Sequence record: JN849462.1
Length of the DNA stretch: 64,000 nucleotides
Direction: 5' to 3' (one strand)
A model generated the notes under the pieces. It was not told the DNA's origin and did no database searches. It was given only the letters and a program-made list of their open reading frames with translations. The position numbers and the translations under genes were made by a program. Positions 2,254 to 45,947 of the stretch are shown piece after piece (positions within the stretch are counted from its first letter, which is position 1; each line of letters starts with the position of its first letter).

Positions 2254-3165
2254 ATGTCTATGTTCAAACGCAAATCTCCAGCACAACTTCAAGAAAAACT
2301 AGAAAAAATGTCAAGCAAAAAGTCATTTGACAACGCTGACGAGTGGAAACTAACCACTGATAAACTAGGTAACGGTTCTGCGGTGATTCGCTTCCTTCCT
2401 GCAAAAGGCGAAGACGACCTACCATTCGTAAAAATCTTCACTCACGGTTTCAAAGAAAACGGCAACTGGTTCATCGAAAACTGTCCATCGACTATCGATC
2501 TTCCTTGTCCATGCTGTGCAGCTAACGGCGAGCTTTGGAAAACTGAGAACGAAGACAATCAAAACATTGCGCGTAAACGCAAGCGTACTCTTTCATACTG
2601 GGCTAACATCGTTGTAATCAAAGATGACGCAGCGCCAGAAAATGAAGGCAAAGTTTTCAAATACCGCTTCGGTAAGAAAATTCTTGACAAGATCACTCAA
2701 GCTGCTCAAGCAGACGAAGATCTAGGTGTACCGGGCATGGACGTGACTTGTGTATTCGACGGTGCTAACTTCAGCTTGAAAGCTAAGAAAGTATCTGGGT
2801 TCCCTAACTACGACGACTCTAAATTCGGCCCAAGCACTGAGCTATACGGCGGTGACGAAGCTAAACTTAAAGAAGTTTGGGATGCAATGCACGATCTGAA
2901 CGCAATCATTGCGCCTTCAGCTTTCAAATCAGAAGCTGAACTACAGAAACGCTTCTTGCAAGTAACTGGTGCGGCTCAGCCAAAAGCATCGGCTGCTCAG
3001 AATCTTGAAGCGCAACTGAACACTTCTGCACCTGCTCAAGCAAATGCTCCAAAAGCGGCTGCTAAGCCAGCGGCATCAGTAGACGTTGATCCAGAGCCAG
3101 TAACTGACTCTGTTGACGACGAGCTAGACGCACTGCTTGCTGACCTAGAGCTAGGCGACGATTAA
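2254..3165 (+). CDS. 32: ssDNA-binding protein gp32
   Basis: MFKRKSPAQL, AVIRFLPA, HGFK..G.WFIENCPST, CPCC zinc site, acidic tail. Confidence 0.97.
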   Translation: MSMFKRKSPAQLQEKLEKMSSKKSFDNADEWKLTTDKLGNGSAVIRFLPAKGEDDLPFVKIFTHGFKENGNWFIENCPSTIDLPCPCCAANGELWKTENEDNQNIARKRKRTLSYWANIVVIKDDAAPENEGKVFKYRFGKKILDKITQAAQADEDLGVPGMDVTCVFDGANFSLKAKKVSGFPNYDDSKFGPSTELYGGDEAKLKEVWDAMHDLNAIIAPSAFKSEAELQKRFLQVTGAAQPKASAAQNLEAQLNTSAPAQANAPKAAAKPAASVDVDPEPVTDSVDDELDALLADLELGDD

Positions 3166-3172
3166 TGAATGG

Positions 3173-3194
3173 AAAGGGGCTGTTAAGCCCCTTT
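3173..3194 (+). terminator. Intrinsic terminator after gene 32
   Basis: aaaggggc-tgttaa-gccccttt. Confidence 0.75.
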
Positions 3195-3215
3195 GTTCTC
3201 TCTATAGGAGATTAA

Positions 3216-3761
3216 ATGAAAGTTCAAATCGTTTTTGCACATGCTATGAGCAAATCACCACATGCCCCTTTTGGCAATCAAAACGCACTCCCTTGGAAAC
3301 ACAATAAAGAAGACTTAGTACGATTTAAAGCCGCGACAATGAATAGCGTGCTTGTAATGGGTTCTAAGACGTTTGAATCACTACCGGGTAAGTTGCCCCA
3401 TCGTCCTCACATTGTGCTTAGTAGCAGCGATACAGCGACGGCTAGAAATGGTCAGCGTGCCGATGTTTACTGTTCGTGTGACGACTTCGGAGCGTTAATT
3501 AAGAACATCGAAAATGTTTATCTTATCGAAGGCTTTGATAAAATAAGTGTTATCGGTGGCCCTAGTGTTATCGAGTCTGCATTACCTTTTGCAGACTGCA
3601 TATATAAAACTACAATCGTTGAAGAAATTGAATCGTACGACGTTACAATTGATTTGACTAAAATATTCTGGCATTTCCCTCACAGAGTGGAATCGGAGGT
3701 CGTTGAATGTCAAAATGGCTCAACGATTTTCATTGAAAAGTTAACAAAGGGTGACTTATGA
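3216..3761 (+). CDS. frd: Dihydrofolate reductase
   Basis: FG.QNALPWK, VMGSKTFESLPGKLP.R, VIGGPSV. Confidence 0.9.
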   Translation: MKVQIVFAHAMSKSPHAPFGNQNALPWKHNKEDLVRFKAATMNSVLVMGSKTFESLPGKLPHRPHIVLSSSDTATARNGQRADVYCSCDDFGALIKNIENVYLIEGFDKISVIGGPSVIESALPFADCIYKTTIVEEIESYDVTIDLTKIFWHFPHRVESEVVECQNGSTIFIEKLTKGDL

Positions 3762-17040: not shown

Positions 17041-17272
17041 ACTTGGTGACTTCATTGAAGTCACTGAAAGACTTGACCAAGAGAGCTTTTTTGGTCAGTT
17101 AATTGATATTGCACCGTGTCTATGGGCACGTGGTGATTTTCTACGACTTGTCGATGACGCAGGTAATGAAGTTCAAGTGAACACTGTGAACATCGACATG
17201 ATTAATGGCACTGTTGTGAGCGAAATCATTCGCAACGCTCATGGCTTTATGTATTGTGAGGAAAAGATTTGA
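17027..17272 (+). CDS. Hypothetical protein
   Basis: Overlapping operon ORF. Confidence 0.65.
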   Translation: MKQIRLGDFIEVTERLDQESFFGQLIDIAPCLWARGDFLRLVDDAGNEVQVNTVNIDMINGTVVSEIIRNAHGFMYCEEKI

Positions 17273-17712
17273 AAGGTTACGTATTTGTAAATCGCTACTG
17301 TAAAGGTATTCAGGCTGGTATTCAAGGCGCTCATGCGTTGCTACGTCTTGCGCGTAAAGCAGAAAATCCGGTTTTCAATACATGGCTAAATGACCACGAG
17401 ACGATTTGTGTTCTGTCTGCGTCTGGTCACGACCATCTTGAAGAAATCGAAAAGACCATTCGTGAAATGAATGTTGTAGAAGACATCACGTTTTTTCAAG
17501 AAGAAGGTTTACATCACTCTCTAACGGGTGTAGCATTCATTGGTGACGACACGCTAATGAAAGTTCAAGCCGAAATGAAAGAATGGCGCGAACTTCGTAA
17601 AATTGGCGAAGGTCCGAAGCGTCGAGACTTCGACTCAGATATGTTCTACAAGTACGGTCGAACATATGAACTTGCAAAATACTTAGAGGGGTTTCATTCT
17701 CATCATGGATAA
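17269..17712 (+). CDS. Peptidyl-tRNA hydrolase II (Pth2)-like protein
   Basis: GIQAGIQGAHA, ETICVL, FQEEGLHHSLTGVAF resemble PTH2-fold motifs. Confidence 0.55.
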   Translation: MKGYVFVNRYCKGIQAGIQGAHALLRLARKAENPVFNTWLNDHETICVLSASGHDHLEEIEKTIREMNVVEDITFFQEEGLHHSLTGVAFIGDDTLMKVQAEMKEWRELRKIGEGPKRRDFDSDMFYKYGRTYELAKYLEGFHSHHG

Positions 17713-17935
17713 CTTAAATCTTAAATTGACTACTGCTTCTCGTTTTGAAGAATTGATGACGCGCCCTGGCGTCATCGTCAAGAACAGCTCTTCGGGTCCT
17801 GAATACATCACGACTGTTTACGATAAAGGCGAGTTAATTGCCGAACGTGTCCTGTACGTATCGCAAGCAGAGCATTTCGAGCTACAACTTCCTGAAGCAG
17901 TAAAAGCAGTTCGAAAGCCTAGTAAACTGCCGTAA
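17705..17935 (+). CDS. Hypothetical protein
   Basis: Overlapping operon ORF. Confidence 0.6.
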   Translation: MDNLNLKLTTASRFEELMTRPGVIVKNSSSGPEYITTVYDKGELIAERVLYVSQAEHFELQLPEAVKAVRKPSKLP

Positions 17936-17940
17936 AAACT

Positions 17941-17970
17941 GTTTAACAACTAACTTTGTGAGTGTAATAT
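17941..17970 (+). promoter_or_regulatory. Class B promoter
   Basis: G-TTTAAC, 17 nt, TAATAT 17965. Confidence 0.6.
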
Positions 17971-17971
17971 T

Positions 17972-18172
17972 ATGAAATCTAAAGGTTTTACTCTGATCGA
18001 ATTGATGGTCGTGATTGTGATTTTAGGTGTTTTGGCGACAATCGGCGCAGGTGCATTGGGTTTAGGTCAAACTGCATCGTACACGACTCAACCGCAATCA
18101 GTGACATATGAAATTGACGGTCAGTTGATGCAATGTACTCCTGTGCAATCTGCATGGGACGATGATTTTTAA
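17972..18172 (+). CDS. Type IV prepilin-like protein (class III signal peptide)
   Basis: MKSKG|FTLIELMVVIVILGVLA: canonical G/F cleavage site, E5 and hydrophobic helix. Confidence 0.8.
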   Translation: MKSKGFTLIELMVVIVILGVLATIGAGALGLGQTASYTTQPQSVTYEIDGQLMQCTPVQSAWDDDF

Positions 18173-18181
18173 AGGTAATTG

Positions 18182-19081
18182 ATGAAAAACTACTTGCAAC
18201 TATGTACTGAAATTCTCAACGAAGGTGATTTTCTTGAGAATCGAACAGGCACAAACACTGTTAGCGTGATTTCGCGTGAGCTTCGCTGGGATTTATCGAA
18301 AGGTTTCCCGTTACTGACGACTAAGAAAATGGCAACTAAAGCCATCTTCGGTGAACTTCTATGGTTCTTGAGTGGTTCGGGACTGATCAGCGACTTGCGC
18401 AAATACACTGAGCTTTCAGACGAAGATTTCTGCATTTGGCAGCAAAATCTCGACGAGCTAAACGAGCGTGCAAAGAAAGCAGGTATTGTTCGAAATGAAG
18501 ACGATCTCGGTTATGTTTACGGTAAAGTATGGCGTAAGCGTCTATCTGTGACTGCTGACAAAGAAGTGACTGAGTTCGACCAGATTCATCAATTACTGTG
18601 CGATATTGCAGCGGTTAAAGAAGACCCGACGCAAAGTGCGCAGCGTCGCATGATAGTTGAAGCATGGGACCCGTACTTCCACACTGAAAGCAACTCAGTT
18701 GACGTAGCTCTACCGCCGTGTCACTATGGCTTTCAAGTGTTTGTGCGTAATGGTAAGATCAGTCTGAAGTGGAATCAACGTTCAGTTGACACATTCTTGG
18801 GTCTGCCGTTCAATATCGCATCGTATGCACTATTGGTTCACATTCTAGCACAGCTAACTGGCTTGAAAGTAGGTGAACTGATTTTCTCTGGTGGTGATGT
18901 TCACATTTATGAAGATCACATTGTGCAGGTACTGAAACAATTGCGACGTACTCCGCGTGAGTTACCGCAAATTCAACTACCTGAATTTGATACGTTGTCA
19001 CAATTGTTGACTAAACGTGCAAGCGACTTTGTTGTGTACGACTATGATCCGTACCCAGCACTAAAAGGTAAAATGTCATGA
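18182..19081 (+). CDS. td: Thymidylate synthase (ThyA type), intronless
   Basis: NRTGT, FPLLTTKK, GELLWFL, LPPCH, QRSVD.FLGLPFNIASY, GDVHIY. Confidence 0.98.
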   Translation: MKNYLQLCTEILNEGDFLENRTGTNTVSVISRELRWDLSKGFPLLTTKKMATKAIFGELLWFLSGSGLISDLRKYTELSDEDFCIWQQNLDELNERAKKAGIVRNEDDLGYVYGKVWRKRLSVTADKEVTEFDQIHQLLCDIAAVKEDPTQSAQRRMIVEAWDPYFHTESNSVDVALPPCHYGFQVFVRNGKISLKWNQRSVDTFLGLPFNIASYALLVHILAQLTGLKVGELIFSGGDVHIYEDHIVQVLKQLRRTPRELPQIQLPEFDTLSQLLTKRASDFVVYDYDPYPALKGKMS

Positions 19082-19274: not shown

Positions 19275-19481
19275 ATGAACGTTGGTGAGTTCGTAGAAGG
19301 GTTGTTGACATTAATGGTATATGGTATCATTGCAGTTTGTCTTATTCTCGTACTGTCAGTTGGCGGGCTTATCTTCGGAACGTGGCTCATCATTTCGGGT
19401 CATACAATCGCTGGGTGGGTTGTTTCTGTTGTCTCAGCGATTATTTTTGCTTTCATATGCGCATTAATGAGGAATTTGTAA
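19275..19481 (+). CDS. Small membrane protein (2 TM)
   Basis: Two long hydrophobic stretches. Confidence 0.65.
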   Translation: MNVGEFVEGLLTLMVYGIIAVCLILVLSVGGLIFGTWLIISGHTIAGWVVSVVSAIIFAFICALMRNL

Positions 19482-35951: not shown

Positions 35952-35954
35952 TTT

Positions 35955-45946: not shown

Positions 45947-45947
45947 T

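Follow-up and report, generated by a model that had tools for sequence, protein, structure and literature searches.

The gene pp2_030 of Vibrio phage phi-pp2 encodes a very short protein that, on sequence comparison, belongs to the prepilin-type N-terminal domain class and is not a pilin or pseudopilin proper. As judged from the profile alignments, its homology to pilins is real and is restricted to the signal and the first part of the long pilin helix (alpha1N). We propose, tentatively and at somewhat short of an even chance, that this protein is a pilin-derived stub, which host type IV filament machines would handle as a defective or poison subunit. The strongest constraint falls on a predicted C-terminal hairpin with no detectable pilin relationship, and the key activity may lie outside pilus biology.

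The window analyzed here, 64,000 nucleotides in length, comprises bases 1-64000 of phi-pp2 (JN849462.1), to which it is 100% identical. This phage is a KVP40-like T4-type lytic myovirus of the genus Schizotequatrovirus, and its host is Vibrio parahaemolyticus. An earlier sequence-only reading of the same DNA had placed the gene in a lytic phage, and phi-pp2 is indeed a strictly lytic T4-type phage. Coordinates of pp2_030, of its parts, and of the adjacent features are listed in Table 1.

Table 1. The mini-prepilin gene pp2_030, its parts, and adjacent features (positions in the window)
Feature	Position	Strand	Remarks
pp2_029, constant upstream neighbour, 76 aa, phrog_14360, unknown function	17705..17935	+	
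Early-type promoter-like motif (TGTTTAACA, then TAATAT)	17940..17970	+	-10 end 1 nt before pp2_030 ATG
Mini-prepilin gene pp2_030 (= KVP40.0030)	17972..18172	+	66 aa plus stop, ATG start, TAA stop; phrog_13280 member
pp2_030 leader peptide M1-G5, basic, ends in Gly-1	17972..17986	+	Predicted prepilin-peptidase cut after G5
pp2_030 mature residues 1-24 (F6-L29), pilin alpha1N-type hydrophobic helix	17987..18058	+	Phe1, Glu5, Gly14; Gly-rich end
pp2_030 linker G30-T45, Gly/Thr/Ser/Gln-rich, variable	18059..18106	+	Predicted disordered; pN/pS 0.25-0.74
pp2_030 invariant C-terminal motif Y46-V58 (YEIDGQLMQCTPV)	18107..18145	+	Predicted beta-hairpin, one Cys; pN/pS 0.00
pp2_030 variable tail Q59-F66	18146..18169	+	From orthologue alignment
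td (thymidylate synthase), constant downstream neighbour	18182..19081	+	9 nt past pp2_030 stop codon

The 66-residue reading frame given in the earlier reading was exact at both ends. Along its whole length, the protein is matched by the profile of phrog_13280 (E 7e-43, residues 1-66 on profile positions 1-67 of 67). Two alternatives for the start codon were considered and rejected: an in-frame TTG at 17954 is unconserved (ATT in nt-1), and start codons downstream of the ATG at 17972 would leave out part of codons 5-11, which are under protein-level selection. Codons 5, 8, 9, and 11 show synonymous changes only; this shows that translation covers the leader and the FTLIEL stretch and begins at the ATG at 17972.

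Ten pp2_030 orthologues were aligned, and pN/pS was calculated by Nei-Gojobori counts. From the N-terminus, which is invariant, the alignment passes through a Thr/Ser/Gln linker that varies and has indels to an invariant block of 13 residues and a variable tail. For residues 1-29, pN/pS is 0.04-0.28; for the C-terminal motif it is 0.00, at pS up to 0.78. By these counts, pp2_030 is a real gene, and both of its conserved blocks are under strong purifying selection. A wider comparison of nine family members, spanning 43-47% identity to pp2_030, retains Lys-2, Gly-1, Phe+1, Thr+2, Leu+3, Glu+5, and Gly14 as invariant residues at the N-terminus and Gly50, Cys55, and Thr56 in the C-terminal motif. 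Mature position 22, which is Gly in pp2_030, is Pro in the two most distant members, as it is in the pilins returned by the searches. Additionally, codons 1-4 (ATG AAA TCT AAA, 17972-17983) are identical at the DNA level in the ten orthologues of the KVP40, ValKK3, and nt-1 clades, with pS elsewhere reaching 0.7. This identity suggests a constraint at the nucleotide level, acting either on translation initiation or on the start region of an overlapping promoter; it is not common to the deeper relatives.

The prepilin-type N-terminus was recognized by two curated models, Pfam PF07963 (N_methyl; 38.4 bits with a gathering score of 21.2, E 7e-10) and NCBIfam TIGR02532 (37.5 bits with a cut-off of 16.3). 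The protein starts with a basic leader of five residues ending in Gly, followed by F, T, L, I, and E and then by a hydrophobic stretch; hydropathy is highest across residues 6-28. The class III signal peptide seen in the earlier reading, with its basic leader, Gly-1/Phe+1 junction, and Glu+5, is therefore borne out, the cut-offs of both models being passed. In a six-frame scan of the 64 kb window, pp2_030 was the sole ORF with such a motif at its start.

Comparison of the pp2_030 family with a Vibrio PilA by hhalign gave a probability of 98%, with an alignment that covers the first 33 columns only. The earlier label of a prepilin mimic is apt as regards the likeness to pilins and falls short where it implies mere similarity, since the N-terminal 28-33 residues are homologous to those of pilins. 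A pilin origin of the C-terminal motif was considered as well and was rejected because the alignment ends at column 33. Profile searches against the PDB likewise matched alpha1N only, in the order geopilin (Geobacter PilA-N), PilA, MshA, PilE, and GspG, with PpdD also found; the best match to the family profile, Geobacter PilA-N, scored 48 bits. Equivalog scores were far under their cut-offs (GspG, 25.9 vs. 88.85; PpdD-type, 29.1 vs. 138), and the PpdD-type, GspG, GspH, and PilA models all scored 24-29 bits on pp2_030. Among Vibrio genes, those nearest to the N-terminus of pp2_030 are an orphan pilin-like gene beside asd and the PilA of a pilABC operon. An attempt to name the host target (type IV pili, MSHA, or type II secretion) from the N-terminus was given up, because the shared segment is generic and the models score similarly.

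Some of this likeness has been recorded before. The KVP40 record for KVP40.0030 cites a match to PF00114, the Pilin family. Orthologues are annotated as "PilE" in the record of QD01 and as "PulG pseudopilin" in that of ValKK3, and one UniRef entry and one nr entry for the member from phage K567 carry prepilin or pilus names. The pilin likeness of the orthologue is also noted in the ValKK3 paper (PMC13142089). Thus, the pilin-like N-terminus of the family has already been noted by annotators. Neither a functional nor an expression study of KVP40.0030 or a relative turned up in the literature searched, nor did a transcriptome of a KVP40-type phage.

In type IVa pilins and type II secretion pseudopilins, as in pp2_030, a basic leader ending in Gly is followed by Phe+1, Glu+5, Gly14, and a hydrophobic helix of ~21 residues. 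Unlike these proteins, pp2_030 has neither the amphipathic alpha1C nor the alpha-beta head nor the disulfide-bounded D-region, and it is encoded in a lytic phage beside nucleotide-metabolism genes. No globular alpha-beta head and no long alpha1 were found in the 66-residue protein, for which AlphaFold2 (AF2) predicts a helix at residues 8-28 and a two-strand hairpin. The two-Cys, disulfide-bonded region of pilins is also not present, a single Cys (C55) being found in all KVP40-type members. The Geobacter PilA-N protein ("geopilin domain 1"; PDB 2m7g, 6vk9, 7tgg, 9egp) resembles pp2_030 in its mature length of ~60 residues. However, the match to it comprises alpha1N only; the pp2_030 helix is broken after ~24 residues and continues into a linker and a hairpin, and no PilA-C-type partner gene is adjacent.

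The AF2 model consists of the helix at residues 8-28, a disordered linker, and the hairpin formed by strands 44-48 and 51-55; its pLDDT of 68 corresponds to moderate confidence. Identical secondary structure was predicted with alignments of four and of nine sequences. The hairpin strands overlie the invariant block, so that the invariant C-terminal motif corresponds to a predicted hairpin with a single Cys. The predicted mature protein has 61 residues, and the earlier reading was also correct in describing its C-terminal part as minimal, with ~37 residues past the hydrophobic helix. If the pilin topology applies, the protein would have one membrane helix and ~37 periplasmic residues. A Foldseek search of the PDB with this model (66 residues, pLDDT 68) gave nothing better than E = 2.5, a result that carries no information for a model so small and of such confidence.

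The tails beyond the motif are of different types. They are acidic and end with DDDF in KVP40, ValKK3, and K567, and they comprise two to three residues in VS1/VS2/QD01 and in nt-1/CZ01. The acidic tail with three Asp and Phe (residues 63-66; 18158-18169) was also found in two of the more distant members (P0005 and P0009) and is not family-wide. It is reminiscent of the acidic C-terminal tip of the bacterial single-stranded DNA-binding protein. Genes of DNA metabolism surround pp2_030, yet its tail is predicted to be periplasmic.

The pp2_030 ORF was found in all 28 of the KVP40-like records that contain the surrounding 2.2 kb. An exhaustive HMMER search with the orthologue profile, covering 1.84 billion representatives, returned 14,157 proteins at E <= 1e-3, nearly all of them by the N-terminal motif alone. 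Five farther proteins of similar size (P0005, P0006, P0009, P0037, and P0028) were matched over most or all of the profile. A search of 5.8 billion proteins with the family profile delimited the family by a sharp gap: nine clusters were found at E <= 1e-19, and the next hit was at 1e-10. One of the nine clusters was new (P0153, 61 aa). Among 185,579 species of bacteria and archaea, each represented by one genome, no full-length family member was found in cellular genomes; all matches were to the N-terminus.

The member designated P0005 belongs to Vibrio phage K567 and to other genomes of ~250 kb. Together with P0006, P0009, and P0037, it occupies the same slot in contigs of T4-type phages, directly upstream of td. 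The order of genes in this slot is dut, a dexA-like gene, small ORFs, an ORF of 75-77 aa, the mini-prepilin gene, and td. In the deeper relatives, the gene for the 75-77-residue protein abuts or overlaps the mini-prepilin gene, an arrangement that suggests co-transcription and translational coupling of the two. The fifth protein, P0028 (E 9e-11 against phrog_13280), belongs to a different phage lineage and is encoded in an N4-like podovirus, in the interval that separates its two RNAP II subunit genes. On this contig (L019, 2114-4891), the gene for P0028 lies at 3113-3334, and three other small ORFs are also located between the RNAP II subunit genes. To judge from N4, this is presumably an early region.

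No genes for type IV filament machinery were found in the neighbourhood of pp2_030. Two genes upstream, pp2_028 (147 aa, 17269-17712) has a weak match to the PTH2 peptidyl-tRNA hydrolase family (23.8 bits vs. a cut-off of 23) and belongs to phrog_3668, annotated as "hydrolase". Downstream, KVP40.0033 (19275-19481, phrog_17378), a 68-residue ORF with segments of strong hydrophobicity, has an annotation in KVP40 and none in phi-pp2. A homing endonuclease is annotated in the td region of the ValKK3 record, and in a distant relative (L020, 6222-8099) an ORF with GIY-YIG and I-TevI domains divides td into two Thymidylat_synt pieces, as with the td intron of T4.

Prepilin-type N-termini are also encoded elsewhere in viral DNA, and 144 such viral stretches were found in IMG/VR. 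Among the 79 prepilin-like ORFs extracted from IMG/VR contigs, 15 are no longer than 80 aa and have C-terminal peptides without relation to the pp2_030 family. Three contigs (L033, L052, and L063; match at 3001 in each) encode a second family of 76-82 aa, with a conserved two-Cys C-terminal region unlike the KVP40 motif. The proteins of these contigs, as well as phrog_11263 (72 aa) and phrog_10597 (59 aa), share the N-terminal motif of pp2_030; in contrast to it, they have unrelated C-terminal peptides.

The earlier reading had also assigned pp2_030 a promoter of its own, under its own label of class B. The motif TGTTTA-N18-20-TAnnnT is a genuine signal class in the window, with 11 sites on the + strand where shuffled sequence gives 1.3 +/- 1.0. 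The site upstream of pp2_030 shares its -35 element (TGTTTAACA) and its spacing with the clear promoters at 35954 and 40178. It is conserved throughout the KVP40, ValKK3, and nt-1 clades, where its spacer varies. Its -10 element (TAATAT) ends at 17970, and the distance from the -10 element to the ATG is 18-54 nt for other real genes in the window. With standard sigma-70 geometry, the predicted start point falls at ~17975-17979, within codons 2-3, with 17977 in codon 2 as the central estimate. Since the -10 element ends 1 nt before the ATG, transcripts from this site are predicted to lack the start codon of pp2_030. Hence, the early-type motif stands, and its role as the gene's own promoter does not. 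In the deeper relatives, a gap of 4-10 nt or a gene overlap precedes the mini-prepilin gene, and such a promoter motif is absent.

Most likely, to judge from this geometry, pp2_030 is translated from read-through transcripts begun upstream, and the motif at 17940-17970 probably serves td, which lies 211 nt downstream of it, or is inactive. An active motif would give td a leader of ~205 nt holding the body of pp2_030 minus its AUG. A parallel case is the motif at 1959-1989, within gene 59 and 264 nt ahead of gene 32. Two other sites at which the motif seemed to sit right against an ATG turned out not to be real gene starts: the one at 1959 falls within gene 59, ahead of gene 32, and the gene at 45947 has its annotated start 25 nt later. 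The 15-nt invariant block ahead of the pp2_030 ATG was not found repeated as a motif in the window, and no T4-type late promoter (TATAAATA) was found near the gene. From the gene neighbourhood and the strand, we infer early or middle timing of pp2_030. A terminator-like hairpin (9 pairs, loop of 3) with a T-run was observed at 18139-18159, inside the 3' end of pp2_030 and before td; it is absent in the short-tail orthologues of VS1, VS2, QD01, nt-1, and CZ01.

The proposed action of pp2_030 as a counterfeit subunit would proceed as follows. The protein would be made early or in the middle of infection from a polycistronic transcript starting upstream, and it would insert in the inner membrane, where the prepilin peptidase of the host (PilD/VcpD) would cut off the five-residue leader and methylate Phe1. 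No PilD homologue was found in KVP40-type phages by tblastn with a Pfam-verified Vibrio PilD fragment as the query, and any processing of pp2_030 must therefore rely on the host enzyme. The mature stub of 61 residues, with its hairpin in the periplasm, would then be treated as a subunit by host type IV filament machines, the candidates being the competence/ChiRP pilus, the MSHA pilus, and/or the Eps type II secretion pseudopilus. Without alpha1C and a globular head, the stub could not sustain normal filament growth; it would be a subunit that is defective, ends the chain, or occupies the platform, and its conserved hairpin and Cys would make a specific contact in the periplasm. The infected cell would be expected to lose its pili and/or type II secretion. 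The benefit to the phage is speculative and may lie in the exclusion of pilus-dependent competitor phages or in altered attachment of the infected cell.

The main argument for such engagement comes from the N-terminus. Gly-1, Phe+1, Glu+5, and Gly14 are invariant although a plain anchor would not need them, which argues for engagement with the host peptidase and filament machinery. The strongest case among these pilin-specific residues is that of Glu+5: in pilins, Glu5 is needed for methylation and assembly and is not needed for membrane insertion or cleavage.

There are precedents for viral interference with pili. PfsE of the Pseudomonas filamentous phage Pf4, a very small inner-membrane protein with a cytoplasmic N-terminus, shuts down type IV pili from the inner membrane by binding PilC (PMC8764522) and is the closest functional precedent for the mechanism proposed here. 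Unlike pp2_030, PfsE is not described as prepilin-like, and it comes from a temperate filamentous phage for which the pilus is itself the receptor. Inactivation of PilB by phage proteins has also been reviewed (PMC11436027). No sequence kinship of pp2_030 to PfsE, Tip, or Aqs1 was found; Pfam, NCBIfam, PHROGs, and the PDB gave only prepilin-type or unknown families. The haloarchaeal provirus SNJ2 supplies its own pilins, PilA1 and PilA2, to the host; these have class III signals and are processed by the type IV pilus machinery of the host (PMC12426801). In contrast to pp2_030, they are full-length proteins with a globular domain and build working pili, and SNJ2, unlike phi-pp2, is a temperate archaeal virus, whose pilins benefit the host and a second virus (PMC12426801). 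One point tells against the proposal: the receptor of KVP40 is OmpK and not a pilus (PMC13609209), so that loss of pili would not serve self-exclusion.

In its most specific form, the proposal is that pp2_030 is a chain-terminating mini-pilin that is processed and loaded by the host and disables pili and/or type II secretion, its hairpin and Cys forming the block. This strategy would be common to T4-type and N4-like vibriophages and may recur, with different C-terminal peptides, among the many short prepilin-like ORFs of viral contigs. On the sequence comparisons reported here, we consider this form possible and rather doubtful.

The C-terminal motif raises a different explanation, namely that the prepilin-type N-terminus is a compact anchor that is inserted and trimmed and that the periplasmic hairpin with its Cys acts on a target other than pili. 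Superinfection immunity against related phages, lysis timing, and envelope enzymes are suggested targets; the Imm, Sp, and RI proteins of T4 are small membrane-anchored periplasmic proteins. In agreement with this explanation, no other part of the protein is as conserved by pN/pS as the C-terminal motif, in which Gly50, Cys55, and Thr56 are kept family-wide and which has no pilin homology; a lone conserved Cys in the periplasm is suggestive of a specific partner or of dimerization; and the neighbours of pp2_030 look early or middle by their products and strand. However, the invariant Gly-1, Phe+1, Glu+5, and Gly14/Pro22 would be needless for a plain anchor at such divergence, a charged Glu in a transmembrane helix is costly unless used, and Pfam, NCBIfam, and PHROGs returned no named exclusion or lysis family. 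We regard such an anchoring role as possible, though less likely than that of a counterfeit subunit.

The earlier reading had offered a dominant-negative pilin or a peptidase decoy. Since the most constrained part of the protein is a non-pilin hairpin, which would be needless for a pure decoy, that reading is incomplete. As a decoy, the protein would be abundant and, as a substrate, would keep the host prepilin peptidase occupied, so that host prepilins and pseudopilins stay unprocessed. The perfect consensus cleavage site and the lack of a peptidase in the phage fit this idea, as does the fact that several Vibrio systems depend on one prepilin peptidase. Once cleaved and released, such a substrate would nevertheless inhibit weakly, pilins processed before infection would stay usable, and neither Glu+5 nor the invariant hairpin would be needed. 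We consider titration of the peptidase improbable.

We see little likelihood, too, that the stub is a working minor or tip subunit, whose productive incorporation into a host filament or pseudopilus would display its C-terminal peptide outside the cell, or release it there, for the benefit of the phage. The SNJ2 pilins are assembled by host machinery (PMC12426801), the residues used in pilin assembly are kept in the pp2_030 family, and short pilins can assemble, structures of Geobacter PilA-N being among the PDB matches. Against incorporation of this kind, the pp2_030 helix ends at about mature residue 24 in a Gly-rich break, with no alpha1C and no head; the next gene is td and not a PilA-C-like partner; filament-related genes are not found close by; and the lytic cycle is short. 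Finally, the very short length of pp2_030, its annotation as "hypothetical", and the resemblance of only its N-terminus to known proteins might suggest that this ORF is spurious or is what is left, without function, of a captured host pilin gene. This is extremely improbable in view of the fixed synteny in 28 of 28 genomes and deeper lineages, the strong purifying selection with many synonymous changes, and the existence of a PHROG family of its own (phrog_13280).

Several descriptions given here appear to be new: a delimited family with an invariant C-terminal hairpin, its fixed place upstream of td across deep T4-type vibriophages, the copy in an N4-like phage, the absence from cellular genomes, and the promoter geometry. 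If the N-terminus is only an anchor, pp2_030 would be an ordinary small early membrane protein. If the protein does act as a counterfeit subunit, pili or type II secretion would for the first time be seen to be inhibited, or hijacked, in this way; the known phage inhibitors of pili bind the ATPase or the platform protein instead. Its source would be a strictly lytic T4-type phage, a group in which remodelling of the host surface is little studied. Pili and type II secretion of Vibrio underlie attachment, DNA uptake, secretion, and phage reception, and a mini-pilin of this type would shape phage-phage competition in marine and aquaculture settings. It would also provide a minimal natural probe of how pilins are recognized and loaded, and the 15 other short prepilin-like ORFs of viral contigs suggest that the theme may extend past the pp2_030 family.
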